Made by a program: the position numbers and the translations under genes | Part shown: positions 23,316-63,200 of the stretch, in pieces | Layout of the letters: each line of letters starts with the position of its first letter | Numbering within the stretch: position 1 is the stretch's first letter | The notes under the pieces: model-generated | Seen by the model: the letters and a program-made list of their open reading frames with translations, nothing else | The model's database searches: none | What the model was told of the DNA's origin: nothing | Source of the DNA: Epiperipatus broadwayi | Taxonomy: Eukaryota > Animalia > Onychophora | DNA: 64,000 nucleotides | Direction: 5' to 3' | NCBI GenBank assembly: GCA_028023455.1 | Contig: JAQFVV010000008.1 | Location: 5,146,001-5,210,000 of the forward strand

Positions 23316-23361
<46 letters not shown>

Positions 23362-23378
23362 GTATAAAAATGAATGTA
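23299..23378. repeat. Palindrome with 20-bp arms around a (TA)n core
   Basis: TACATTCATTTTTATACAAT (23299-23318) / ATTGTATAAAAATGAATGTA (23359-23378). Confidence 0.9.
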
Positions 23379-24696
23379 TATATATATCATCTTATATAAT
23401 AAATGTTAACCAAATTTATAGAAGTCTTGTAAATATTCATACAATTATTCAAATTATTTTTAATATAGTATGTTTATATTGTAACAGTAGCTGGGTTCGA
23501 ATATGGATAAGGCAATAATGATTACAAAAAAGTGTTTATTGCGATTGTTATTTTGAATTAAATTAATAGATGTGAGAAAATTTATAGATATTCATTCAAA
23601 CCCTGTTACAAAAGAGTGCGAGTGAAATACATTAACCATTTAAAGGCATGAATGTATACATATATATTTCTTACACGTGTTGTGATGTTGCATAGAATTA
23701 ATTACTAACAGATAGATTTGTATGTGAAAATGAAGAGAAGCAGTTATGTGCAGAGTTGTATTTTTATATTTTTTTTCATTTTATGTATTTTTGTTGTTTA
23801 TTATCATAAGTTATAGTTATTTAAATAATGTCATTAGTAGCATGTTTCTTAATGAAAGCAAATTAAAATATATAAGGCTGGAGAGTAATAAAAGGGATTG
23901 CAAGTTGTGCCATGAGCAATTATAGAGAAAGAAGTGCAGAAAGTAAATTTTAAAAAAGTGATTAGATTAATTAATAAAAATTAATAAGAATGAACTCCAT
24001 CCAAATGCTGGGGTAAAAGAATCATGTGGATTCATTAAACCAGCTCAGTTTACAGCTATTTTGTGACCTGCCTGACCTTTATCTATGGAGATTTTAGCCA
24101 TCTATTTCAAGCAAGTGAAATGATCACCAAACTCCAAACAGTAAGATCTTTTGTGCAATCAATTTTAGAATCATCTACCTAACCTCTAGGATGGATTATA
24201 AAAATTTTATGGAATCTTTCATCATCTTCCAGACCAACAATTCTCACTAGGACAATCACCATTGTAATACTGTAAGCTTACAGATCATCAGCCTTAAACA
24301 TGTGAATGTTCACTCTCAAATAAGGTAACTTTGACTTTCTCTATATATATTAAATGAACATATAATAATAAATTAAGAAAGATGCACTTTGTCCCAACTT
24401 AAAGAAAGTAATTATAGAAATAGATTAAATCATTTAATAAATACACTCTTTCTTGAATGTGTATATTGATATTATATATATGTATCAGAATGAATAAATC
24501 ATATGTTTGAGATATTAATATATACATGTATTAATAAATCGTAGATATTCATGACCATATGTTTCTAAAAGAAATAAAATAATAAGATTCGTGGGGAGAT
24601 AGGAAAATTATAAAAGTATATAAATGATGTTTCTTTGTAAGATAACCTTCCCTTCATTCTCCCAATAGACATTGTCTCTCAGACCTTGAGATTGAA

Positions 24697-25200
24697 CTAG
24701 TCTGGATAAGGCACCCAAAAAGGGTCCACTGGACCTTTTTTTTGTTTTTGATGGGTATAATTCTTATTAATTGATGAGATTGGTACTTGAGATTGGACAT
24801 GTTCAGTGCTCATAAATATCATGGGTAGACTGTTAAAATATATTTGTCTTCTTTTTGGATCTTTAATGTAATTTAAATATATACTATTTTTTGTGGCATC
24901 TATTCTATGCCCATATTTCAAGTAATGAATGTATAATGCAGATTTATCATCTCTTCTTATAATTGCATTATTATGTTCTTTGGCTCTTACCTCTAATTGT
25001 TTTCCAGTATGCCCAAAATAAATCATTTTACAAATTTCACATGTAATTTTATATACAATTTCTTTTTTGTACTGTATGTCATCTCTTAACCTATAATTAC
25101 CTATTAATTTATCAAGATTTTTACTATTTGATTATATAGCTGTTATAAAGAATTTATGATTATTTTCTGACTATTAAACTCTAAAAATACAATATTAATC
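24697..25200 (-). mobile_element. Penelope-like GIY-YIG endonuclease remnant
   Basis: ORF IYFGHTGKQLEVRAKEHNNAIIRRDDKSALYIHYLKYGH is a typical PLE GIY-YIG second motif. Confidence 0.85.
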
Positions 25201-31800: not shown

Positions 31801-32300
31801 TATATGATAAATGCTATAAGAGAAAGCATGCTCTTTATTATGTATTAGTAAATACAAGCTATGTAGGTCATGTGATATGTGACTTGGTTATATTACTATT
31901 ATAATTTTGGCTATTGAATCTTTGGCTATATTAAACTTCTAAGGCTATTAATATATGGAGTATCTGAATTTAGTTCAGGTCCATATAACTATTTTAGTTG
32001 GAGAGCTCAATTTGAAGACATTAGATGTCTGTAAGTTTCAGATCTTCTTAATAGTTCTTCACTAGAGGTAGTACTTTTGAATCTGGTGTTTTAAATCCTC
32101 ACTGAAAAGACCCATAGCTTGAAACCATTCTGGGGATGGAGACAATTATAGATAAATATTTGAATGCTTTCTCTTATAGGATTTACCATCTAAAAAAAAT
32201 AATAAATATGCCTGTTTAGAAATATTGGTATACTCTTTATTACATATTGGTAAATACAAACTATATAGATCAAGTGGTATGTGACTTGGTTTTATATATA
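31801..32300 (+). mobile_element. Old diverged copy (about 1.15 units, 402-bp period) of the 409-bp hammerhead repeat family
   Basis: Collinear blocks TAAATACAAGC, TATATGG, CCATATA.CTAT, TTTGAAGACATTA, CACTGA..ATAGCTTGAAA.CAT..TCTG; direct repeat 31831-31895 / 32233-32295; ends in (TA)n. Confidence 0.8.
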
Positions 32301-43040: not shown

Positions 43041-43554
43041 GTAATGAGAATGCACTTTATAAATATAATTATTATACAGGTATTTGTTAATTTAATGTTT
43101 AGCTCGTAAAATTTTTAATAATGCTGAAAATATGAAATTCTGCCATAGTAATATCATTGATAATTATGTAATTATGATGCTTTTTGCCCATATGAAGATA
43201 AGTTGTACTTATTTTCTTTGTTAAACCCTGTGGTGTTTAGTATAATTGTTAGTGTCAGATTTTGGAATGTGAGATCTTTGGATTGATTCCAGTTTTAGTT
43301 TTTCCAGTGTCTGAACTTATTATGAACTCTCAAGCCATAAAACCATTGAATTAAGTATTATTTTTTACTATAAAAAATTAATTTGTAAATATTTATTTAT
43401 TGATAATGTTTCTATAATATTTATGCTTTGCTTTCTGTTTTATAGTTAAAGGTTGTGACATTTAGTTTGTGCATGTTATACTTCATTTGGCTGGATTGTT
43501 TGTTGCTGATGTTGATTCTTGATTTAATATTTTCCAAATACTTTTCAGTTTATG

Positions 43555-44366
<812 letters not shown>

Positions 44367-44677
44367 GCTTTCAAAAAGGCATTTTATTGATTCTATAAAA
44401 GGTTACATTAAAAGTGGTTTACATAATTTTGGTATATACATTGATTTATTCTGTTACATAAAAAATGAATATTTGAATGATATAGTTCAATTTATGGCTT
44501 CTTGAGTTGTTTGAACTTTTGTGACTTGAATGAATCCTTAAAAAAATCATAATAGTTGATGTATAAGTTGCTTTTTTGATCTTTTTGCTGTTTATAGCTT
44601 GTATGCATATAATTAAAAATCTGAGAAGCTATTGAAAAAGTTTTTCTCTAGTATTTTTTGTCAGATACTTAGTGTTG

Positions 44678-47588
<2,911 letters not shown>

Positions 47589-47898
47589 GCTTTCAAAAAG
47601 GCATTTTATTGATTCTATAAAAGGTTACATTAAAAGTGGTTTACATAATTTTGGTATATACATTGATTTATTCTGTTACATAAAAATGAATATTTGAATG
47701 ATATAGTTCAATTTATGGCTTCTTGAGTTGTTTGAACTTTTGTGACTTGAATGAATCCTTAAAAAAATCATAATAGTTGATGTATAAGTTGCTTTTTTGA
47801 TCTTTTTGCTGTTTATAGCTTGTATGCATATAATTAAAAATCTGAGAAGCTATTGAAAAAGTTTTTCTCTAGTATTTTTTGTCAGATACTTAGTGTTG

Positions 47899-48126
<228 letters not shown>

Positions 48127-49836
48127 CATTCTTCTGTAAATGCTATAGCTGGTCAGCTTATTCCTGATAAAGATGGTATTCCAGATGTTACCTTTTGTCA
48201 TGGTTGTTCTTTGATTATTTCTGATATGGCCATGAGGATTAAGTGTTCTGGTCAATGTCAGAAGTATTTTCATTTGTCTTGTACTAAGCTGTCTAAATCT
48301 GATGCTATTATTTTTCAAACAATTGGTAATGGATTTTTTAAATGTCAGGCTTGTAATAATATAACTTTAAATATGAAATTTCCAGATGTTGATAATGAAC
48401 TTCTTGATGAATTGGTAATAGATAATGACTCAACAGAGTCATTGGACAATAACATCATGGTTTTAGATTCTGAAGACAATGAGTGTAACTTGGTCAAACC
48501 TATGGTCTCTGAGGGTCATATTACTAAGGAAAATTCAGATTTGATAATAGTGTCTTCTTCTGATAATACTTCAGTTCAGATTGTTAGGGAAGATTCTCAT
48601 GATTCTAGTGAATTAAATAATATTTCTAAATCTAATACTAGATTATCAGATTTTGTGGAGACAGGTGTTAATTCTACTATTGCATCCACAGGAATGTTTG
48701 AGTCTTTTTCTGTTGATTTAAACTGCATGGATAAATGTGTTAATGATATCATTTCACAACCTGAACATTTTACTTTAGAGGTTTTACAATCTTGTTCTAT
48801 GTCTCTAATTCATTCTCTAATTATTAAGATGTCTCAACTTTGTAATAAATCATTGAATTGTTCTTCTAATTTTTGCAAAGGTATTCAATGCTCTCTTCCT
48901 TCTGTCAAGTCAACTTGTTTTTCCAAAGTGAGTTCACATAAAACCAGAATATTTTACAATAAAAATTTTCATAATAAATATCATGAAAAGCATGATACTA
49001 GTAATAATATTAGTTTATATGCTAGAAAGAGTTACAATAATATAAAAAATGTTGTACACCATAATACTGGTTCAGAGTCTCAATCATTTGTTGAGAAAGA
49101 TAAAACTTGTTATGAGACTGGAGTCAAAGATCTAGGTTCTTCTATAAATCATAGGGATGATTTACTTTTCAAAAAACACATTAAAAGAAAGAATGATTTT
49201 GGGCAGAATATTTCTAAAGAGAATGAGAAACTTGGGCTTAAAGGTCCAATTTCTTATAGAGGTCCTAATAATTCTAATGCATCTTATAAATGGTGGCCTT
49301 ACAGTTCTGTTTCATCAATATATTCTTCTAATACCTCTTCTCCTTTTCAGCAATTTTCTAATAGAAAATTATCAGTTAGGCAGCTTGGTAAACAGGATAG
49401 TTTACCCCATAATTTTAGACTATATTCAAATAAATTTTTTAATAAAAAATTTAATAATTATACTTCTAATTTTGGACAGGATATTTCTAAAGATAGTGAA
49501 AAACTTAGATTTAAAGATCCAATTTCTTATAGAAGTCCTAATAATGGTAACGGTTCATTATTAATTAAGGATAATGATAAATATTATAAATATTTGGTAT
49601 CAAATTTGCCAGTAGATGCTAATTCTTCTGATGTACAGAGATTTTTGGAAGACAAACTTCAGGTTAAAGTCATATGTATTAAGATTAATATGTTTAATTC
49701 TAATATTAGTAGTTTTTTTGTTTCAATTTCCAAACATAAGCGTTTGGAGTTTATTTCGAATCATTTATGGCCTTGCGGTACTACATTAAAAATTTTTTAT
49801 GGCTCTTTGGCTAGTTCATTAATACTTTCTGATTAA
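48127..49836 (+). CDS. LINE B ORF1p: N-terminal PHD finger and C-terminal CR1-type ORF1 domain; 5' start not present
   Basis: CHGC-x10-CSGQC-x3-HLSC...CQAC (Cys4-His-Cys3); C-terminal LVSNLPVDANSSDVQRFL...SSFFVSI...LWPCG. Confidence 0.85.
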   Translation, partial: HSSVNAIAGQLIPDKDGIPDVTFCHGCSLIISDMAMRIKCSGQCQKYFHLSCTKLSKSDAIIFQTIGNGFFKCQACNNITLNMKFPDVDNELLDELVIDNDSTESLDNNIMVLDSEDNECNLVKPMVSEGHITKENSDLIIVSSSDNTSVQIVREDSHDSSELNNISKSNTRLSDFVETGVNSTIASTGMFESFSVDLNCMDKCVNDIISQPEHFTLEVLQSCSMSLIHSLIIKMSQLCNKSLNCSSNFCKGIQCSLPSVKSTCFSKVSSHKTRIFYNKNFHNKYHEKHDTSNNISLYARKSYNNIKNVVHHNTGSESQSFVEKDKTCYETGVKDLGSSINHRDDLLFKKHIKRKNDFGQNISKENEKLGLKGPISYRGPNNSNASYKWWPYSSVSSIYSSNTSSPFQQFSNRKLSVRQLGKQDSLPHNFRLYSNKFFNKKFNNYTSNFGQDISKDSEKLRFKDPISYRSPNNGNGSLLIKDNDKYYKYLVSNLPVDANSSDVQRFLEDKLQVKVICIKINMFNSNISSFFVSISKHKRLEFISNHLWPCGTTLKIFYGSLASSLILSD

Positions 49837-49919
49837 TTTCTTTTGCCCATATTGTCCTTTATTAACATTTTTTTTTCTCTCTCTTGATTATTGTTTGTTT
49901 TTATATATTTTTTGATATT

Positions 49920-51146
49920 ATGTTTGGAATTTATTGTTTTTATATAAACATTCGTGGGATGAGAACTAAGACTGCAAAAATTAAGCAATTCTTCAGTTCT
50001 GAAAATTTTGATATTGTTTTTATTTCAGAAACTTGGCTTACTCAACACATTTCAGATGAGGTTTTTATGGACAATAGATATAAAGTACTTCGAACAGATA
50101 GATCTTCTGATGTTGCTTCCAAGGGTGGAGGCACGCTCATTGCTTTTAAATGTAATTTTATACATAAGTATATTCCTATTTCATCATCATCTTGTGAAGC
50201 TACATGGTGTAAAATATGTTTGAAAAATAGTGTCAAAGTTCTTTTGGGTACTATCTACATAAAACCAACATTATCCTTTTTAGAGTTTAATGAGTTTCTT
50301 TCTATTCTTGAAGATTTTTTAATCAAATATGAATCATATATACTTATTACTGATGATTTTAATATTCCTGATTTATATTTAGGTACTACTATCATAGATT
50401 CAGTCTCTTTTTCACCTAAAGCATTGAGAATGATTTGTTTTTGCAATTTGTTAAATTTAAAACAATTTAATCCATACACCAATTTTAATGATCACACATT
50501 GGATTATATTCTTAGTAATTTTCCTACAATTGAATGTTTAACTACTACTTCTCTTCCCTTTTCCATTGATTTGCATCATCCTCCCTTAGAATTTTATATT
50601 AATATTAAATTTAATAGACTTTGTCCTTTTAAAATTATGAAGAGAAACTACAAAAAAGAAAATTATTTGGGTCTTTGTTTACAATTATCTAATTTTAACT
50701 GGGAAAAATTGTATTCTTCATCTGATGGAGATTTCTGTATGAAGTTTTTTGAACAATCATTTAGTGAACTAATTGACAAATACATTCCTAAAGAAAAAAT
50801 TTTAACTAACCATTTTCCTCTCTGGTTTTCAGTTTCTCTTAAAGAAATTATTAAAAGGAAATCATTTCATCATCGTAAATATTGGAAAACTAAGGACTTA
50901 AATTATTATAACAATTTTATTAATTATAGAAGATTGTCTAAGGTTATATATTATAGAGATTTTCAAAAATTTATACAAAACACTGAAAATCATATTTCTG
51001 ATAATCCTTTGCAATTTTGGTCTCTGGTTAAGGTTTTAGGTATTACAAAAAAAAAATTACAGAGTAATAATTCTAATCTAGCCGCAGATGATTTTTCTCA
51101 TTATTTCTCAGAGCTTTTTAAACATCTCAGTCTTTTACTAATTTAA
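49920..51146 (+). CDS. LINE B ORF2 part 1: apurinic-like endonuclease
   Basis: YINIRGMRTK, FISETWL, DRSSDVASKGGGTLIA, DDFNIP (GDFN position), TLDYI, DLHHPPL. Confidence 0.92.
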   Translation: MFGIYCFYINIRGMRTKTAKIKQFFSSENFDIVFISETWLTQHISDEVFMDNRYKVLRTDRSSDVASKGGGTLIAFKCNFIHKYIPISSSSCEATWCKICLKNSVKVLLGTIYIKPTLSFLEFNEFLSILEDFLIKYESYILITDDFNIPDLYLGTTIIDSVSFSPKALRMICFCNLLNLKQFNPYTNFNDHTLDYILSNFPTIECLTTTSLPFSIDLHHPPLEFYINIKFNRLCPFKIMKRNYKKENYLGLCLQLSNFNWEKLYSSSDGDFCMKFFEQSFSELIDKYIPKEKILTNHFPLWFSVSLKEIIKRKSFHHRKYWKTKDLNYYNNFINYRRLSKVIYYRDFQKFIQNTENHISDNPLQFWSLVKVLGITKKKLQSNNSNLAADDFSHYFSELFKHLSLLLI

Positions 51147-52666
51147 CTGAAAATAATTATCTAGTTGAAGAAAGAATAACATGTGATTCATTTATTGAAT
51201 CTGATGTTGTTTTTGCTATTAAGCAGCTTAAATTACATTCTAGTGTGGGCCTTGACAATATTCCAGCTTTCATTTATAAAGGATGTGCTGAATACATTAC
51301 TTCTCCTCTTTTGCATATTTTTAATTGCTCTTTAGCAAATGGTACTTTTTCTACATCCCTTAAAATTGCTAAAGTTGTTCCTATTTTTAAGAAAGGATCT
51401 AGAGATTCGGTAAGTGACTATAGGCCTATTTCAATTCTACACACTGTTGCTCGAATATTTGAAAGATGTTTATATAATAAAATTATCTTGGATGTCTCTA
51501 AGGTTTTGGCACCAGAGCAGCATGGATTTTTGCCTAATAGGTCCATTGAGACAAATTTGCTAACTATTTTTGATCACATTTCAAATTCAATTGAGAATCA
51601 ATCTAGGTTAGATGTTGTTTATTTTGACATGTCCAGGGCTTTTGATAGAGTTAATCATAAAATTCTTCTTCAGAAGCTTTGTAGGTTAGGTTTTTCCAAA
51701 TTATTAATTAATTGGTTTAACTCTTTCCTTAAGGATAGAATGTCTTGTGTGAGGTTTAATAATAAATTGTCATTACCATATTATTGCTTCACTGGGGTGC
51801 CTCAAGGCAGTGTTCTTGCACCTTTATTATTTAATGTATACATTGATGACCTAAAAACATGCATTAAATTTTCACATCTTCTATGTTATGCAGATGATTG
51901 CAAAATTTTTAGGCATATTTATTCTACTAATGACTGTTTTTTACTTCAAAGTGATATAGATAATTTCTTGAATTGGTGCGAATGTAATTATATAGATATA
52001 AATATGGATAAGTGCTCCATTGTCTCTTACTCTAGAAAATCTGAAATTTTAAGGTTTTCCTACTATATTGGTGATTCTAAAATTATAACAAATGATCATC
52101 AAAAAAATCTAGGAATAATATTTTCCAATAATGGGTCTTTTCATAATCACATTAATTTTATGGTGAATAAATCTCTTAAAATTATAGGAGCTATTTACAG
52201 ATATGGAAAAGCATTTAATAAATTTACAAAGATTAAACTTTTTATATCCTTAGTTCTTCCCATCTTGGAGTATGGTTCAATTATATGGAGTCCTCATAAC
52301 AGTACAGATATCATAAGAATTCAGTCTGTTTTTGACAAATTTGCAAAATTGAATAGTTTAGGTAATGAACACTATATTGATTTACTGCTGAGACGAAAAA
52401 CAAGAGATCTCAAGCTTTTTCATACATTTATTTCCCAGAATATTTCTGTATCTAATTTGCTTTCTAATTTAGGTATTAAGAAACAGAATTATAATACTCG
52501 TACTCACAATATTTTTGAACTGAAAATTTGTAAATCTGATGTATTAAGATTTTCCCCTTTATTTCGTTTACCTAGAACTTATAACAAAGATTTTGGTAAT
52601 GATGATGTTTTTAATCTGGATTTTAAACAATTCACTAAAGTCCTCATAAAAAAATATTATCCTTAA
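51122..52666 (+). CDS. LINE B ORF2 part 2: reverse transcriptase, separated from part 1 by a 1-nt frameshift at 51120-51122
   Basis: Frame open from 51122; DYRPISIL, QHGFLPNRS, YFDMSRAFDRV, GVPQGSVLAP, YADD, LEYGSIIWSP. Confidence 0.95.
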   Translation, partial: TSQSFTNLTENNYLVEERITCDSFIESDVVFAIKQLKLHSSVGLDNIPAFIYKGCAEYITSPLLHIFNCSLANGTFSTSLKIAKVVPIFKKGSRDSVSDYRPISILHTVARIFERCLYNKIILDVSKVLAPEQHGFLPNRSIETNLLTIFDHISNSIENQSRLDVVYFDMSRAFDRVNHKILLQKLCRLGFSKLLINWFNSFLKDRMSCVRFNNKLSLPYYCFTGVPQGSVLAPLLFNVYIDDLKTCIKFSHLLCYADDCKIFRHIYSTNDCFLLQSDIDNFLNWCECNYIDINMDKCSIVSYSRKSEILRFSYYIGDSKIITNDHQKNLGIIFSNNGSFHNHINFMVNKSLKIIGAIYRYGKAFNKFTKIKLFISLVLPILEYGSIIWSPHNSTDIIRIQSVFDKFAKLNSLGNEHYIDLLLRRKTRDLKLFHTFISQNISVSNLLSNLGIKKQNYNTRTHNIFELKICKSDVLRFSPLFRLPRTYNKDFGNDDVFNLDFKQFTKVLIKKYYP

Positions 52667-52862
52667 TTTCATGTGATATATTGCCCTTTTAATTATTTGT
52701 GCATTTTATTGTTTTTCTATTTTATTGGTATTATTATTTATTTATTTTTTTGTATTTTTAATGCTTATTTAGATTTGTATATGATAATGAAATTGCTGTG
52801 CAATCTATAATTGGCTAAATGCTGTTGATATGTACATTAAATAAAGAATTGAATTGAATAGA

Positions 52863-53090
<228 letters not shown>

Positions 53091-53109
53091 ATATGCAATG
53101 TGTACAACT

Positions 53110-54260
53110 GCAATATGATTGTAGATATAATATTCCCAAGCACTGCAATTAACAAAGTCATACATCAAGTATCTAAATGATAAAAATTTTCAAATGATTG
53201 GCAATAGTGATATTGATGCTTAAAAATGGGATGTTAAAAAATAAAGACATACTGTCTTTCATAACTTTTACATGAAGTTATTGTAAAATTTCTACAAAGA
53301 AATTTAGATTCAAGTTGGCAAAAAATCAAGCTAAATTTAAAAGTGAGTACTATATATTAAAATAGAAGTTATAGAAAATATCAGAAGGTGTGAACTACTA
53401 TAATTTATTGAATTTATAAGTTATAAGAAGGTTGATTCTATAAAAATTTCTGATATCATTAAATGTTTGGAATATCAAAAACATAGAGCCGAGATATTAT
53501 CATGTTCTTGAGAATATTTATCAAAATACAACAACGATTACACCATGTTTTGACACTAATAAGATTAATTTAGATAATGTGTTAAAGAAAGTATTTTGTT
53601 TTTCCAACTTTTTTGAAGCCGTTATGCAGGAAATATTTCACTGAGTAAAAAATAAGTACTGATTACTAATAGCATTTTGTAACTAATTGGGTTATTTTCA
53701 CAAATAATGTTTAGAAGCTGAAGCTTTAGGAAATATCATAAGAACTATCTGATGAAAGAAAGGAAGCAGCTTTTAAGTCTTAAGTTAATATTCAATAGCT
53801 TTTCAAAATTAAGTAATAGAAATTGATAATAATGAATTATGAGTAATTAAAAAAATTAAATTTGAAATAGAATGCCTTTAGTAGAAGTAACAATATTTTT
53901 TTAAAAATTGATCTATGCACTTGAAAAAAGTTTTATAATTGGTTTTAATGATTACTATAATAATAATATGAAGATAATAGATTATATAGCAAAGTAAAAA
54001 CAGAGGTGCATTGGAATTAGGAAGAGGTCTAAAGTAAAATACATGAAGTAGAAAATAAATAGCTGTCTCTGACATCATAAAGAGAATTAAGCTGCGAAAA
54101 TGTGTCTGGAATAGATATGCACTAGTAAATTTATTAAAATGATATGGAGATATAAAGCTATAAATCAGATATGTTGAATTAAAAGAAATTGAATTAAATT
54201 CCAAAATCCTTCTATTATCAGTGAACCGATCAGATGCACATGATGATGATGATGATGACA
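53110..54260 (+). mobile_element. Decayed RTE-clade LINE RT and 3' end with (GAT)n tail
   Basis: NDW, NQAKFKSEY, FISYKKVDSI, FEAVMQEIF, VSDIIKRIKLRKCVW remnants; TGATGATGATGATGATGA tail at about 54241-54258. Confidence 0.7.
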
Positions 54261-57350: not shown

Positions 57351-57796
57351 CTTTAATATGATTGCCATTTTTAAGCCGATTATTAATTATTTATTTTTAT
57401 TTCAAATTCAGTTACACCTATTGAGTATATAGCAATAAGAATTTCTTTTATCTCCACATGTTGCATTTTGAAATTGTACACATTCAGAAAAATAGCATTT
57501 TATTATGTTGTGTAAAGTATGCTGTGGAATATTTTTTAATACTATATATATATGTGTGTGTGTGTAATATAAAAATCAATATCTTTTGAATATACACTAA
57601 AAGAATATAATTTATATAAATTGTACTGTATTTTGATATATATATTGATTTGTATATTACATATATTGTGAAACGAATACAGATATCAAACTTTATATAT
57701 ATATCCACAGATGGCGTCCTACCAAAAACACCTATCAAGCGTATATTTCGTTTACATAAACGTCAGAGTAGTTAGTATTCACTATCTCTAACTATA

Positions 57797-57854
57797 ATTC
57801 CACTTTCAGATCATGATTTCAAGCTATTTGCTATCGTCAGTGAAAGACAGGAAT
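57797..57854 (-). ncRNA. Minimal Type I hammerhead ribozyme
   Basis: Reverse complement of the motif at 58483-58540. Confidence 0.8.
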
Positions 57855-58205
57855 AAAGAAACTAGATCTAAATACAAACTCTGAGCGTTTATGAAACAAT
57901 TTCTATTCAGCTTGCAAGCGTGAATTTTTTAGACACGTAATGTCTTCAAACTCAGCATAGCAAACCAGATAGCTATATGGGTCTGATCTCAGTTCAGCAT
58001 CACCATATAGTAGAAGCCTCTGCAATCTATATCATTGCAAGAAAGACCTCAAAGGTACATTTATGATAAACAAAAATGCAAGTTAAAAAACTTGCTAACG
58101 CTTGTATTTATGTCCACAGATGGCGTCCTACCAAAAACACCTATCAAGCGTATATTTCGTTTACATAAACGTCAGAGTAGTTAGTATTCACTATCTCTAA
58201 CTATA

Positions 58206-58263
58206 ATTCCACTTTCAGATCATGATTTCAAGCTATTTGCTATCGTCAGTGAAAGATAGGAAT
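58206..58263 (-). ncRNA. Minimal Type I hammerhead ribozyme
   Basis: As above; one substitution in the helix I internal loop only. Confidence 0.8.
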
Positions 58264-58482
58264 AAAGAAACTAGATCTAAATACAAACTCTGAGCGTTTA
58301 TGAAACAATTTCTATTCAGCTTGCAAGCGTGAATTTTTTAGACACGTAATGTCTTCAAACTCAGCATAGCAAACCCATATGCTGAGTTTGAAGACATTAC
58401 GTGTCTAAAAAATTCACGCTTGCAAGCTGAATAGAAATTGTTTCATAAACGCTCAGAGTTTGTATTTAGATCTAGTTTCTTT

Positions 58483-58540
58483 ATTCCTGTCTTTCACTGA
58501 CGATAGCAAATAGCTTGAAATCATGATCTGAAAGTGGAAT
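58483..58540 (+). ncRNA. Minimal Type I hammerhead ribozyme (predicted cleavage after AUC at 58528)
   Basis: Helix I CUUUCA/UGAAAG plus AUUCC/GGAAU; core CUGACGA; helix II AGC-AAAUA-GCU with U.U at its base; GAAA; helix III AU-CAUG-AU; C17. Confidence 0.85.
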
Positions 58541-58889
58541 TATAGTTAGAGATAGTGAATACTAACTACTCTGACGTTTATGTAAACGAAATATACGCTT
58601 GATAGGTGTTTTTGGTAGGACGCCATCTGTGGACATAAATACAAGCGTTAGCAAGTTTTTTAACTTGCATTTTTGTTTATCATAAATGTACCTTTGAGGT
58701 CTTTCTTGCAATGATATAGATTGCAGAGGCTTCTACTATATGGTGATGCTGAACTGAGATCAGACCCATATAGCTATCTGGTTTGCTATGCTGAGTTTGA
58801 AGACATTACGATCTAAAAATTCACGCTTGCAAGCTGAATAGAAATTGTTTCATAAACGCTCAGAGTTTGTATTTAGATCTAGTTTCTTT

Positions 58890-58947
58890 ATTCCTGTCTT
58901 TCACTGACGATAGCAAATAGCTTGAAATCATGATCTGAAAGTGGAAT
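58890..58947 (+). ncRNA. Minimal Type I hammerhead ribozyme
   Basis: Identical to 58483-58540. Confidence 0.85.
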
Positions 58948-59298
58948 TATAGTTAGAGATAGTGAATACTAACTACTCTGACGTTTATGTAAACGAAATA
59001 TACGCTTGATAGGTGTTTTTGGTAGGACGCCATCTGTGGACATAAATACAAGCGTTAGCAAGTTTTTTAACTTGCATTTTTGTTTATCATAAATGTACCT
59101 TTGAGGTCTTTCTTGCAATGATATAGATTGCAGAGGCTTCTACTATATGGTGATGCTGAACTGAGATCAGACCCATATAGCTATCTGGTTTGCTATGCTG
59201 AATTTGAAGACATTACGTGTCTAAAAAATTCACGCTTGCAAGCTGAATAGAAATTGTTTCATAAATGCTCAGAGTTTGTATTTAGATCTAGTTTCTTT

Positions 59299-59356
59299 AT
59301 TCCTGTCTTTCACTGACGATAGCAAATAGCTTGAAATCATGATCTGAAAGTGGAAT
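59299..59356 (+). ncRNA. Minimal Type I hammerhead ribozyme
   Basis: Identical to 58483-58540. Confidence 0.85.
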
Positions 59357-59707
59357 TATAGTTAGAGATAGTGAATACTAACTACTCTGACGTTTATGTA
59401 AACGAAATATACGCTTGATAGGTGTTTTTGGTAGGACGCCATCTGTGGACATAAATACAAGCGTTAGCAAGTTTTTTAACTTGCATTTTTGTTTATCATA
59501 AATGTACCTTTGAGGTCTTTCTTGCAATGATATAGATTGCAGAGGCTTCTACTATATGGTGATGCTGAACTGAGATCAGACCCATATAGCTATCTGGTTT
59601 GCTATGCTGAGTTTGAAGACATTACGTGTCTAAAAAATTCACGCTTGCAAGCTGAATAGAAATTGTTTCATAAACGCTCAGAGTTTGTATTTAGATCTAG
59701 TTTCTTT

Positions 59708-59765
59708 ATTCCTGTCTTTCACTGACGATAGCAAATAGCTTGAAATCATGATCTGAAAGTGGAAT
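59708..59765 (+). ncRNA. Minimal Type I hammerhead ribozyme
   Basis: Identical to 58483-58540. Confidence 0.85.
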
Positions 59766-60116
59766 TATAGTTAGAGATAGTGAATACTAACTACTCTGAC
59801 GTTTATGTAAACGAAATATACGCTTGATAGGTGTTTTTGGTAGGACGCCATCTGTGGACATAAATACAAGCGTTAGCAAGTTTTTTAACTTGCATTTTTG
59901 TTTATCATAAATGTACCTTTGAGGTCTTTCTTGCAATGATATAGATTGCAGAGGCTTCTACTATATGGTGATGCTGAACTGAGATCAGACCCATATAGCT
60001 ATCTGGTTTGCTATGCTGAGTTTGAAGACATTACGTGTCTAAAAAATTCACGCTTGCAAGCTGAATAGAAATTGTTTCATAAACGCTCAGAGTTTGTATT
60101 TAGATCTAGTTTCTTT

Positions 60117-60174
60117 ATTCCTGTCTTTCACTGACGATAGCAAATAGCTTGAAATCATGATCTGAAAGTGGAAT
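60117..60174 (+). ncRNA. Minimal Type I hammerhead ribozyme
   Basis: Identical to 58483-58540. Confidence 0.85.
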
Positions 60175-60525
60175 TATAGTTAGAGATAGTGAATACTAAC
60201 TACTCTGACGTTTATGTAAATGAAATATACGCTTGATAGGTGTTTTTGGTAGGACGCCATCTGTGGACATAAGTACAAGCGTTAGCAAGTTTTTTAACTT
60301 GCATTTTTGTTTATCATAAATGTACCTTTGGGGTCTTTCTTGCAATGATATAGATTGCAGAGGCTTCTACTATATGGTGATGCTGAACTGAGATCAGACC
60401 CATATAGCTATCTGGTTTGCTATGCTGAGTTTGAAGACATTACGTGTCTAAAAAATTCACGCTTGCAAGCTGAATAGAAATTGTTTCATAAACGCTCAGA
60501 GTTTGTATTTAGATCTAGTTTCTTT

Positions 60526-60583
60526 ATTCCTGTCTTTCACTGACGATAGCAAATAGCTTGAAATCATGATCTGAAAGTGGAAT
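60526..60583 (+). ncRNA. Minimal Type I hammerhead ribozyme
   Basis: Identical to 58483-58540. Confidence 0.85.
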
Positions 60584-60934
60584 TATAGTTAGAGATAGTG
60601 AATACTAACTACTCTGACGTTTATGTAAATGAAATATACGCTTGATAGGTGTTTTTGGTAGGACGCCATCTGTGGACATAAATACAAGCGTTAGCAAGTT
60701 TTTTAACTTGCATTTTTGTTTATCATAAATGTACCTTTGAGGTCTTTCTTGCAATGATATAGATTGCAGAGGCTTCTACTATATGGTGATGCTGAACTGA
60801 GATCAGACCCATATAGCTATCTGGTTTGCTATGCTGAGTTTGAAGACATTACGTGTCTAAAAAATTCACGCTTGCAAGCTGAATAGAAATTGTTTTATAA
60901 ACGCTCAGAGTTTGTATTTAGATCTAGTTTCTTT

Positions 60935-60992
60935 ATTCCTGTCTTTCACTGACGATAGCAAATAGCTTGAAATCATGATCTGAAAGTGGAAT
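60935..60992 (+). ncRNA. Minimal Type I hammerhead ribozyme
   Basis: Identical to 58483-58540. Confidence 0.85.
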
Positions 60993-61199
60993 TATAGTTA
61001 GAGATAGTGAATACTAACTACTCTGACGTTTATGTAAACGAAATATACGCTTGATAGGTGTTTTTGGTAGGACGCCATCTGTGGACATAAATACAAGCGT
61101 TAGCAAGTTTTTTAACTTGCATTTTTGTTTATCATATATATATATAGTAGCAGTTTTTATCAGTTTGCGAAATAAAAGATAAACATATTGACAAAAATT

Positions 61200-63200
61200 C
61201 TTAATGCCTGTAATGAAAGCCAAGAATTATTGGTCTATTTGGGAATAGTTTATTTTTAGCCCTAAGAAGAGTGTGTAACATAAATGTAATGTAAGAATCA
61301 TTTTTACCTATGACTGTTCTGACATATATTGGTGAAGTGCCACATATAAATACTAATTGCAATCTAAGATTACAATGGAATAGTCCTTTCACATTGAAAT
61401 ATTAACATTTGAACTTGTCAACAGTTTAATAATGTTCAATAACTTACATCTTTTCAGCTATTTTATTTAGTAATTGCTATAATGGTTCAGCTGAGTATGT
61501 TTTATTCTAAATAAAATTATAATCATATTTCATGAGTCCCAGAACAAGACTCTTTCTGTTTATGGAGGTTTGGCTCTCTAAATGACTTTTGTTGGAAAAA
61601 CTTAGCCTGCTCTATAACTTTAAAGCCAAGAAAAGCTATTCTTTTGTTTCCAACCTATTAGAACTTAAACATCAACATTTAGCATACATTTATCAAAATA
61701 AAATATAGTCTAGATATTCCAGTTGCAAGTTGATCAACTATTTTTTTGAGTTTATAAATGACAATTTCTAATGCTCTGTGGCTTCATCATCTATGATAAT
61801 TGAAGGTAGAGATTGTTGAAGTCTATTTGCAAAAACACTCTGAAGAAGAATAACTACCAAATAAATGTTTTATTTGTAATGAAATAATAATCCCTGATAA
61901 GATATATCTCATGACTACTTTAAATAATCACTATTGTATGAGGAATCCATTTAGAATTAGATTTAAATTTATTTTCAACTCCTTACTTTAGTTCTCAAAG
62001 CAAATACTCACAGAGCTCTTAACTCCATAATCTTATATTCTCAGTTCAAAAACTGTGGCATATTATTTTTTAAAATGTTAGTCCAGTAAAGCCTTTTTTC
62101 ATACTAATTAAAATTATGGCCCATTAAAAGAAATCAAATGTAATTGTGTTCAGAATCTTTCTGACTTTACTTTTCTGTCTTCTCCAAGAACATGATTAGC
62201 TTATTATCCTGATCATAGATTTTTGAAGTCAGCTGGAGGTCCATCTTTTGATCTCTACTTGTCTTTACCCAACAGTTTTTTAAAGTAATGGAGACTGCTG
62301 AGACATTACCAATCTAAATTGTTGTTGAAGTGCCAATAATGACAATTAGTAACTTGAAGGTTGGACTTTTGTTTGCTCTTTAACAGTTATTACATTTGTC
62401 TTGCTTAACAGCTGTTAATTTGTTTTTTATATATATTCACCTACATTTTTTCGACAAAGTGGCATATTTTATGCAGCCTATATAATAACTGAAATGATAA
62501 TTTGTCTTCATATGTTATCACTGAATGACTGCTTAACCTTTAGTCCAATGATAATAATTTTTCTTGCTTACATAACAATAATTCTTTTGACTTTTTTATT
62601 TTAAAATGACAATAGATTCATGATTTATCCATTACCCTGGTTTTTTCTAAGTCCTGATTTTAGTAAGAGTACAGCTTTTTTTCAGTGTTTTTTATCTTAT
62701 GGATATATGTGAGATGGCTGATACAAATTCTGTCAATGTTTACAAGAAACTCAATTGTCAGTTTGTAGGCATTCATACCACATGTGAACTAACCCTCTAA
62801 CTTTTCAGTGAGAAAATCTTAAAATTATGGTAAATTCCTCTTGGTTGCAAAAGTTAAACATACCTTTTGCATCTTAATTAGAATTTTTAGTTAAAGAACT
62901 TATTTAGAAAACTTGGAGCCTTACAAAAAATTAACTTAGGGGAATGACCCTAACATTGCTTGTTATAATATAATCTGATAAATTACAGACCCACACACAT
63001 TTAGTTCTAACTATTTTTAGAGTCCATGAAAAATTGAAATTTGTATAGATAAAGAGGTTAGTTTCCCAGGAACTCTGAATCAAATTCTTCAAGTGGTCTA
63101 TTCAAGTCATGGTAACACTTTCAAGTCTAAATGCAATATACTAAGGCTGGTGCTGTACATCAAATTATTTTTCAATCTCAAATAATGATATAAATAGATT
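61200..63200 (-). mobile_element. Heavily decayed non-LTR retrotransposon ORF2 (APE to RT C-terminus)
   Basis: EFDSEFLGN (APE start), VFANRLQQSLPSII (RT), LRLQLVFICGTSPIY (RT C-terminal) remnants in the correct order. Confidence 0.5.

Follow-up and report, generated by a model that had tools for sequence, protein, structure and literature searches.

A two-armed array of a 409-bp hammerhead repeat in Epiperipatus broadwayi: a probable non-LTR retrozyme insertion with the anatomy of a Penelope-like element

Near the right end of the window we analysed, a 64,000-nucleotide stretch of contig JAQFVV010000008.1 from the onychophoran Epiperipatus broadwayi, lies a 409-bp tandem repeat with hammerhead ribozyme motifs, and the question it raises is whether this is a satellite or a mobile element and, if mobile, what machinery put it there. 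Non-LTR retrozymes of animals are tandem repeats of about 150-450 bp with low GC content and a type I hammerhead in each unit; they are non-coding and occur as dispersed copies, they give rise to unit-length linear and circular RNAs, and they co-occur with Penelope-like elements (PLEs) (PMC7229834). A first-pass annotation had read the repeat as such a family, and that reading is supported here by a constrained type I hammerhead, by mobility and by an insertion anatomy of PLE type. Most probably the locus holds a recent insertion of a non-autonomous animal non-LTR retrozyme, placed by PLE machinery, and the element is clearly a new example of this known class rather than a new class. It agrees with the sequence description of retrozymes in unit size, GC content, a hammerhead per unit, lack of coding capacity, dispersal and co-occurrence with PLEs.

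Tandem Repeats Finder reported a period of 409 bp with 99% matches over 58378-61136, and the units, which are 99-100% identical, represent a young, non-coding repeat family. The repeat had initially been described as one head-to-tail array of about 8.4 units; the unit and the similarity of its copies were borne out, but the copies form two opposed arms. The left arm (57704-58375, minus strand), delimited by blastn of the unit, inverted-repeat pairs I1-I9 and alignment of the flanks, comprises 1.64 units, and the right arm (58378-61136, plus strand), delimited by Tandem Repeats Finder, inverted repeats, blastn and reading of the flank, comprises 6.75 units. Direct reading, inverted repeats and blastn all place a head-to-head junction of two filler bases at 58376-58377, where 5'-truncated arm ends at unit positions 373 and 380 are joined and where the flanks form a near-perfect palindrome (inverted-repeat pair I6, with 433-nt arms 9 nt apart). 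On the outside, direct reading identified remnants of a (TA)n target microsatellite at 57694-57703 on the left and at 61137-61147 on the right, and the limits originally proposed, 57704 and 61135, lie no more than 1-2 nt from the actual ends of the element. The two outer 3' ends are of different types. The left arm stops at the short type, at unit position about 226-230, reading ...GCCATCTGTGGA and then TA repeat with no tail, while the right arm stops at the long type, at unit position about 277, reading ...TTTATCAT(A) and then TA repeat. Comparison of ends across insertions defines a 47-nt tail at 61090-61136 on the plus strand, in which the hairpin GCAAGTT-TTTT-AACTTGC (61103-61120) precedes a run of T; the opposite outer end has no such tail.

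By blastn of the unit, the element is built solely of unit copies and has no LTR, PBS or PPT. The GC content of the repeat is 35%, and the observed/expected CpG ratio is 0.75 in the array versus 0.19 elsewhere in the window, the count of 77 CpG per 3432 nt agreeing with the roughly nine CpG per unit in a CpG-poor background seen at first pass. The longest open reading frame wholly within the repeat is 49 aa from a TTG start or 30 aa from an ATG start, in keeping with the claim that the unit has no coding capacity. The element encodes neither a reverse transcriptase nor a GIY-YIG endonuclease and, as no open reading frame exceeds 49 aa, it depends on a PLE and is not one itself.

The 32-nt core motif has nine exact occurrences, with none expected, and each core is intact, as the first-pass annotation had said of its nine copies; they do not all belong to one array, since two of the nine lie on the minus-strand arm. 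A motif search placed the consensus copy of the minus strand at 57797-57854 (C17 at 57809; 93.4 bits on a model of the motif) and the second at 58206-58263 (C17 at 58218; 90.2 bits), the latter differing by a single change in the bulge of helix I. The first plus-strand copy, at 58483-58540, was found by the motif search, the full RF00163 model (27.6 bits) and the motif model, and is followed on that strand by identical copies at 58890-58947, 59299-59356, 59708-59765, 60117-60174, 60526-60583 and 60935-60992. All nine 58-nt regions scored 90-93 bits on a model of this same motif. Across 58483-58540 the order is distal helix I, bulge, helix I, core, helix II, GAAA, helix III and C17, and this C17, at 58528, coincides with the predicted cut after that position. 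Direct reading and the RF00163 alignment both identify CUGACGA, GAAA, the A15.1-U16.1 pair and C17 in the H17 position, and the alignment covers all six helix I pairs together with the CUGACGA and GAAA core. Three helices surround this core, helix I being the open one.

Comparison with the Rfam hammerhead models gave a divided result. The isolated motif matched RF00163 (Hammerhead_1) over its full length with 27.6 bits (E=1.6e-5), below the Rfam gathering cut-off of 34, a curators' threshold and not a biochemical criterion. Across the whole window no Rfam family reached the gathering threshold, and over 57600-61300 no hammerhead match appeared at E<=10; Rfam returned spurious miRNA matches only, and those at 58376-58377 arise because the junction flanks are palindromic.

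Only one pair in the ribozyme is non-standard, the U.U at the helix II base (10.1-11.1), and cleavage may be slow with a helix II this weak (3 bp plus the U.U). Modelling predicts a dimer through an 8-bp helix III at -25.0 kcal/mol, versus 2 x -10.0 kcal/mol for two separate motifs. A unit folded from cut to cut has a z of -4.96, with helix I closing the molecule in the predicted fold. From the published biology of the family, transcripts of the array are predicted to cleave themselves after C17 (at 58528 and the matching positions of the other copies), and probably do so most readily when two hammerheads pair through the palindromic AUCAUGAU helix III. There is a precedent in the axolotl, whose HHR_Amex2 ribozyme has a U.U at the helix II base and a 2-bp helix III; its monomer cleaves at 22% per hour, and dimers do better (PMC7229834). 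The present ribozyme shares with HHR_Amex2 the type I hammerhead, the tetraloop-capped 2-bp helix III, the U.U at the helix II base and the expectation of working better as a dimer, and its repeat resembles the axolotl retrozyme Rtz_353 (Cervera and de la Pena 2020, PMC7229834), by description rather than by sequence, in consisting of tandem non-coding AT-rich units (350 nt in the axolotl versus 409 nt here). The axolotl paper has no inverted, head-to-head or target site wording, and the two-armed, TA-targeted anatomy of the 409-bp element is not described in it (PMC7229834). Retrozymes of coral (Acropora) and mussel (Mytilus) are similar in being short dispersed tandems with a type I hammerhead each, in co-occurring with PLEs and in having a unit RNA predicted to be highly self-paired (PMC7229834); in those animals a single motif is enough for efficient cleavage and northern blots show the circles, whereas for the 409-bp element cleavage and a circularised 409-nt RNA are predictions. 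Newt satellite 2 and Schistosoma Sm-alpha, which the first-pass annotation had named, are the classical repeats, tandem or dispersed, with type I hammerheads, and are similar by kind only.

The first-pass annotation had staked its reading on constraint on the core and helices relative to the rest of the unit; checked across genome copies, the ribozyme is less diverged than the remaining unit and its pairs covary. Of 235 genome copies sampled, about 206 show no difference across the motif. An older subfamily, B, which is 13% diverged, retains a 55-nt identical run spanning the ribozyme and differs at 2 of 58 positions inside it versus 47 of 229 outside (Fisher p=0.0014). In contigs from three public runs, representing two organisms and of uncertain library type, the only ribozyme site polymorphic at 10% or more was N7, the free core position (1 of 38 variable sites, p=0.02).

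The same genome also holds a sister family with units of 410-428 nt (loci L031, L032 and L036-L040), which is collinear across the unit at about 54% identity overall, with blocks that by eye are about three-quarters identical. Its ribozyme has the same design, with 5 bp in the distal helix, 3 nt in the bulge, 6 bp in helix I and a helix III that is palindromic, and its ribozymes likewise stand in minus-then-plus order. At the helix II base it has a canonical G-C where the 409-bp family has U.U, and it scores 31-40 bits on RF00163. A model built from the 409-bp-family motif alone retrieved the canonical hammerheads of the sister family over their full length (23-38 bits). Of 17 pairs compared between the families by hand, seven had changed on both sides with pairing kept, one had changed on one side and one was broken. 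In a model alignment with the sister family, 93.8% of cells paired versus 80.2% after shuffling (0/500), thirteen pairs were altered on both sides versus 7.9 in shuffles (0/500), and covariation was 0.437 versus 0.216 shuffled (0/500) and 0.04-0.15 in slid controls, a signal that comes essentially from two lineages in an alignment fitted to the model. We take these comparisons to show, at the level of sequence, that the type I hammerhead fold is under selection and structurally constrained. The window contains a further relative, at 31849-32290 on the plus strand, which sequence comparison identified as an old and decayed one with its nearest affinity to the sister family; the core of its ribozyme is dead, with CUGAAAA in place of CUGANGA. 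Because of this core, and because helix I has suffered a deletion, we rejected the relic as proof of compensation in helix I; between the two families themselves the compensation is real.

Comparison of the unit with the genome, which had been suggested at first pass, gave 337 matches from the 40 candidates scored out of 752, on at least 45 contigs. At all 16 insertions examined the flanking sequence was unrelated, and (TA)n abutted both sides save for one end masked by an N gap. The family is mobile in this genome, and one recent insertion probably lies at this locus. By blastn the head-to-head, two-armed build is found at nearly every locus, and it is present in all 15 insertions that could be read at both ends, the one in the window among them. 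Each arm has its ribozyme-sense strand directed away from the centre. Each of the 15 readable insertions has one short and one long end (p=3e-5), with the 47-nt hairpin tail at exactly one end (15/15). The outer 3' ends are constant, each at one or other of two CATAAAT sites that lie 47 nt apart, and the inner 5' ends are variable. The position of the central junction differs among insertions; most junctions overlap by 1-7 nt, and seven of the 16 are near-symmetric, within 34 nt (p=0.011). Arms reach 12 units in complete insertions and at least 20 in one incompletely sampled array.

We considered whether the inverted arm could be an assembly artefact such as a chimeric or hairpin long read. 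Palindromic tandems are hard to assemble and PLE structures do trouble assemblies (PMC8557442), but the build repeats at about 16 loci with distinct junctions and arm lengths and recurs in the older subfamily as well as the sister family, and both (TA)n end types are present in contigs of run X3, from a separate study of one of the two organisms; we regard an artefact as extremely improbable. Nearly as hard to credit is an ordinary satellite amplified at the DNA level, by unequal crossing-over, reintegration of extrachromosomal circles or fold-back, with the hammerhead a passive relic. The repeat is tandem and its unit is of satellite-like size, and the near-symmetric junctions (7/16), together with two private variants common to the innermost units of both arms at locus L052, hint that copying of DNA played some part at the centre. 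The fixed, non-identical outer ends, the variable inner ends, the strict (TA)n and the unrelated flanks at 16 loci speak against this origin. A passive relic would moreover decay at the pace of the remaining unit, in contrast to the pair-preserving two-sided changes and lower divergence of the ribozyme.

The anatomy that distinguishes the retrozyme insertion from a satellite is that of a PLE. Published hallmarks of PLE insertions are partial tandems, an inverted 5'-truncated copy and a 30-40-bp tail at one end, and the Naiad and Neptune PLEs are biased toward (TA)n targets (PMC8557442). The element at this locus shows 5'-truncated tandems with an adjoining inverted copy, bears a tail on one side only and sits in (TA)n, and is in this respect like the Naiad and Neptune insertions (Craig et al. 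2021, PMC8557442), with their head-to-tail tandems, inverted 5'-truncated copy, one-sided tail and (TA)n. Because insertion goes into (TA)n, any target-site duplication is hidden. It differs from PLEs in having many-unit tandems rather than one partial copy, in the length of the tail (47 nt versus 30-40) and, from Naiads, in having a canonical hammerhead, which they lack (PMC8557442). The two-armed form also invites comparison with another retrotransposon. Ostertag and Kazazian reportedly described in 2001 a twin priming of human L1 that yields inversion with 5' truncation. In L1 twin priming two cDNAs arise from the two target strands, with outward 3' ends and a microhomology junction, as a minority outcome on linear mRNA. 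The outward-facing 3' ends and the microhomology junction are alike; unlike in L1, the two-armed build is the rule in the 409-bp family, which has two defined, putative priming sites and multi-unit arms.

How a PLE might build such an insertion can be outlined from these features. The PLE endonuclease would nick both strands of the TA repeat, and each 3'-OH would prime reverse transcription on the retrozyme RNA through TA/AUA microhomology, a target-primed, 'twin' priming. The reverse transcriptase would then copy several unit lengths, most simply by circling a unit-length RNA circle, and the two cDNAs would be united centrally by microhomology. In a bolder form of this outline, to which we give somewhat less than an even chance, each insertion would be born in one event as a multi-unit two-armed array: a PLE that targets (TA)n would reverse-transcribe a single unit-length RNA circle in rolling-circle fashion from twin primers, the unlike ends (CATAAAT sites 47 nt apart, one-sided tail) recording two different priming or resolution steps. 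Variants private to a locus can occupy all units of both arms (G322A in 12/12 at L054, T185C in 14/14 at L057), which suggests that satellite-like arrays can be created by a single retrotransposition event. Some arrays are mosaic (at L059, A333G is present in units 4-9 and absent from units 0-3) and are therefore not explained by copying one circle alone. Variants that flip the hairpin loop occur in single units, and one variant sits in unit 2 of both L043+ and L047+ and another in unit 2 of both L041- and L042-. Contigs from the runs show unit-to-unit joins, which are compatible with either tandem DNA or circles.

A PLE helper could also act without an RNA circle, on a linear, uncleaved multimeric transcript from a source array or by template jumping of the reverse transcriptase, as happens for PLE pseudo-LTRs, with the hammerhead serving some other PLE role, for example the trimming of upstream read-through; we think this unlikely, though a serious alternative. 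Autonomous PLEs form partial tandems without known circles (PMC8557442), the mosaic arrays and the recurrence of variant units at equal distance from the 3' end across loci fit such a scheme, and a weak ribozyme would leave multimers intact. Arms of 12 and at least 20 units, however, far exceed a pseudo-LTR, the simplest account of locus-private variants in every unit of both arms is repeated copying of one unit-length template, and coral, mussel and axolotl all have documented circles from elements of this class (PMC7229834).

The first-pass annotation had pointed to many Penelope remnants nearby as the possible helper lineage. Within the window we could verify one decayed GIY-YIG endonuclease relic of a PLE (24700-25131, minus strand; Pfam GIY-YIG E=9e-4, below cut-off), which is not an obvious helper. 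Its downstream region does not end at the (TA)n near 23376, since in 39 other copies the match stops about 60-105 nt short of the TA repeat. PLE relics are abundant in the genome, some in similar minus/plus pairs, and a first look gave 65,411 candidates; among the best 150 of these there was no intact helper PLE and the longest open frame was 397 aa, and by sequence the sampled PLE lineage looks dead. At L048 a PLE fragment with reverse transcriptase and endonuclease adjoins an array, and its 3' UTR appears to end at (TA)5; as a single case we did not accept it as evidence for a helper, and this 3' UTR had no similarity to the unit at E<=1e-5 and no Rfam hammerhead. The anatomy of the insertion is stronger evidence for the helper than the Penelope remnants nearby.

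PLEs are thought to mobilise animal retrozymes. According to a 2020 review, the sequences of animal retrozymes show no motif that reveals the helper (PMC7761336), and a 2026 preprint argues the link between retrozymes and PLEs from co-occurrence and pLTR similarity in vertebrates. The present family adds a different kind of helper evidence, an integration scar found at every insertion sampled, in which tandems and an inverted arm truncated at its 5' end go together with a tail on one side and a (TA)n target. It also provides a second animal example of the weakened U.U hammerhead known from axolotl, a variant that selection maintains. Being young, abundant and uniform, the element lends itself to assays of cleavage, circularisation and retrotransposition. 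If the single-event reading is true, it would make the family a natural read-out of PLE integration and a direct structural proof of the retrozyme helper.

To resolve the layout of the 409-bp repeat, we combined repeat analysis with a blastn search using one unit (window 58815-59223) as query. The first-pass annotation was right about the coordinates and about nine copies of the motif, but its single tandem array of 8.4 units proved to be two opposed arrays lying head-to-head: a minus-strand array of 1.64 units (57704-58375) and a plus-strand array of 6.75 units (58378-61136), joined at 58376/58377 by two filler bases. Tandem Repeats Finder gave a period of 409 bp with 99% matches over 58378-61136. 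Nine mismatch-free copies of the 32-nt motif, which runs from CTGACGA through the cleavage triplet, are present (seven plus, two minus), where shuffles predict none. GC content is 35% in the array versus 25% in the remaining window, CpG observed/expected is 0.75 versus 0.19, and the largest ORF inside the repeat is at most 49 aa. Across the units (~3,380 nt), ~10 positions depart from the family consensus, seven of these through C>T or G>A changes, which fits a very recent insertion in which decay by deamination is under way. The palindromic junction (58326-58420) also gave sub-threshold matches to four miRNA precursor families (MIR5743, 52 bits, plus others); we rejected miRNA genes here, as these matches are artefacts of the perfect hairpin. 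If transcribed, the junction could yield a long hairpin RNA.

At the scale of the window, Rfam returned no hammerhead match. Searched in isolation, the motif aligned with RF00163 (Hammerhead_1) over its full length (27.6 bits, E=1.6e-5), but below the gathering score of 34 bits. All six helix I pairs and the CUGACGA and GAAA core were present, loop 2 (AAAUA) resembled the family consensus, and the sole non-standard pair was a U.U at 10.1-11.1. Read by hand, the motif (58483-58540) consists of a distal helix (AUUCC/GGAAU), a UGU bulge, helix I (CUUUCA/UGAAAG), the core, helix II (U.U plus AGC/GCU), GAAA, helix III (A-U and U-A, capped by CAUG) and C17 at 58528. In the axolotl ribozyme HHR_Amex2, too, helix III is 2 bp long and closed by a tetraloop, and helix II has a U.U at its base; the monomer cleaves 22% in an hour, the dimer much better (Cervera and de la Pena, PMC7229834). 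These are exactly the two oddities of the 409-bp motif, and the element's ribozyme appears to be a type I hammerhead of this weakened U.U kind. Its helix III segment, AUCAUGAU, is palindromic, and a double hammerhead formed by pairing this segment between two motifs is predicted at -25.0 versus 2 x -10.0 kcal/mol. The 409-nt cut-to-cut RNA is predicted to fold far better than shuffles (z=-4.96), with helix I holding its two ends close to each other, the geometry that would be expected for ligation into a circle.

Four observations, from an older subfamily, a sister family, covariation and polymorphism, indicate that the hammerhead motif is under constraint, and because of them we do not see the freely drifting core and helices that the first-pass annotation held would count against its reading. 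The older subfamily (~13% diverged from the young family, period ~408) retains a 55-nt identical run spanning the ribozyme, and its differences fall at 2/58 positions inside the ribozyme versus 47/229 outside (Fisher p=0.0014). The sister family, abundant in the same genome, has units of 410-428 nt collinear with the 409-bp unit and a canonical type I hammerhead (31-40 bits on RF00163). Between the young and sister ribozymes all core bases are retained, and of 17 pairs seven are altered on both sides with pairing kept, one is altered on one side (U-G to U-A) and one is broken (G-C to U.U). A covariance model built solely on the motif of the 409-bp family matched the sister-family ribozymes full-length at 23-38 bits. 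In the alignment that this produced (38 distinct rows), which is fitted to the model and whose signal comes essentially from two lineages, 93.8% of cells were paired versus 80.2% in shuffles, 13 pairs showed two-sided changes versus 7.9, and the covariation score was 0.437 versus 0.216 (each 0/500 shuffles), with slid-partner controls at 0.04-0.15. Finally, we mapped contigs from three public runs, representing two organisms, onto one unit. At a threshold of ≥10% of depth, the only variable site in the 58-nt ribozyme was N7 of CUGANGA, with 37 others outside (p=0.02). N7 is the one free core position.

Contig depth on the 3' half of the ribozyme was roughly 10-50x that of the remaining unit, so this module is common to many more repeats. 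In contigs of run X2, from the second organism (B), depth over 58886-58997 (the ribozyme and ~50 nt downstream) was ~3 to 50x that of the remaining unit, and 58950 T>A was near fixation; a far more abundant repeat in that organism has just this module in common. Separately, three sister-family loci (L036:1501-1573, L038:1501-1571 and L039:1501-1571) gave an unusually long Hammerhead_1 match of 71-73 nt in Rfam. The ribozyme 5' half is repeated there ahead of a complete motif, and in L038 and L039 the match lies close to the switch of ribozyme orientation from minus to plus.

The 5.6-Gb genome contains numerous arrays of the unit: scoring just 40 of 752 candidates gave 337 matches, spread over at least 45 contigs. 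We excised 20 further loci for comparison with the window array. In nearly all examined loci a minus-orientation arm comes first and a plus-orientation arm second, an order shared by the older subfamily and by the sister family. The ribozyme sense runs from the centre outward in both arms, which puts the RNA-sense 3' ends on the outside. These outer ends fall at two fixed unit positions, nominally 234 and 283 (~226-230 and ~277 after trimming bases attributable to flanking TA), and the unit sequence at both sites is CATAAAT. In all 15 insertions whose two ends could both be read, the ends were of different types (p=3e-5), so only one outer end carries the 47 nt that separate the two sites. This tail, at 61090-61136 in the window, contains a 7-bp hairpin with T runs after it. 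Every insertion examined is flanked by (TA)n on both sides, with unrelated sequence further out, and in contigs from a run of a different study these TA junctions recur as loose ends. Inner ends lie at a different unit position at every locus; arms with a defined outer end are 1.4 to 11.9 units long, and most central junctions have a 1-7 nt overlap. Centres are near-symmetric in 7/16 insertions (L041-L058 and window 58376/58377), the arms stopping ≤34 nt apart in the unit (binomial p=0.011); such junctions may represent cDNA ends joined via local hairpins in the unit. At one locus, L052, two private variants are common to the innermost units of both arms. Together with the near-symmetric centres, this is a hint of frequent joining of the centre through local hairpins, or of some arm-to-arm copying at the DNA level.

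Variants private to a locus are present in each unit of both arms. G322A is found in 12/12 units at L054 and is absent from the other copies in a set of ~215, T185C in 14/14 units at L057 and 7/7 at L058, and T382A in 9/9 units at L056. Both arms were therefore copied from the same template variant, and the multi-unit arrays arose during insertion, not by later growth. The simplest reading of these sequences is that the template would be a unit-length circle copied repeatedly, as in the published retrozyme model (PMC7761336). Some arrays are mosaic, and single units in several arrays carry a flipped tail-hairpin loop (TTTT to AAAA) or an 8-nt insertion at unit 251-273 (e.g., L043:6746-7162, L047:5747-6153, L041:3215-3631 and L042:3184-3600). 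In some cases the variant lies at an equal unit distance from the 3' end across loci. This points either to an error hot-spot at the hairpin or to heterogeneous multimers as templates. Because of the mosaic arrays and flipped-loop units, we allow some room for a Penelope-like element (PLE) helper acting without an RNA circle, on multimeric linear templates or by template switching or jumping, although we regard this as unlikely and favor the repeatedly copied circle.

The 409-bp element carries a PLE integration scar. PLE insertions are peculiar in being often 5'-truncated, in their partial tandems and in having an inverted 5'-truncated copy located at the 5' end and a tail of 30-40 bp at one end only, while Naiad and Neptune are strongly biased to (TA)n, which masks target-site duplications (Craig et al., PMC8557442). 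The element shows all four structural hallmarks yet has no ORF; lacking RT and EN, it is not itself a PLE. PLE relics are plentiful in the genome, some in minus/plus pairs, and a helper PLE was not found among those sampled, whose lineage is decayed. On contigs C6244, C21, C6242 and C6218, copies of the PLE endonuclease relic form minus/plus pairs separated by 1.1-2.5 kb, in a head-to-head order matching the retrozyme arms. The genome also offers a single example of a PLE 3' end associated with TA, in a fragment at L048:10-1531 with an RVT_1 ORF, then a 284-aa ORF of weak GIY-YIG similarity, and a 3' UTR apparently ending at (TA)5; ~350 bp downstream of this fragment, a retrozyme insertion lies in a different (TA)n.

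Elsewhere in the window, a (TA)n tract at 23320-23420 lies between perfect 19-nt inverted repeat arms (ACATTCATTTTTATACAAT and its complement). It is not the terminus of the upstream repeat family, because that family stops ~60-105 nt earlier, and it may mark two elements inserted tail-to-tail in one microsatellite. Within 43486-53189, LINE-type reverse transcriptase ORFs (RVT_1 at 46000-46785 and 51122-52663) lie between trinucleotide microsatellite tracts whose translations are poly-N, poly-I or poly-L.

On all features that could be tested, the 409-bp element belongs with the metazoan non-LTR retrozymes, in agreement with the original reading. Inverted arms are described neither in the 2020 retrozyme paper (PMC7229834), where the word 'inverted' is absent, nor in a 2026 retrozyme preprint, where it appears solely in the reference list, and according to a 2020 review no motif points to the retrozyme helper (PMC7761336). 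For this reason, the insertion anatomy is a useful addition to what is known of retrozymes rather than a new kind of element.
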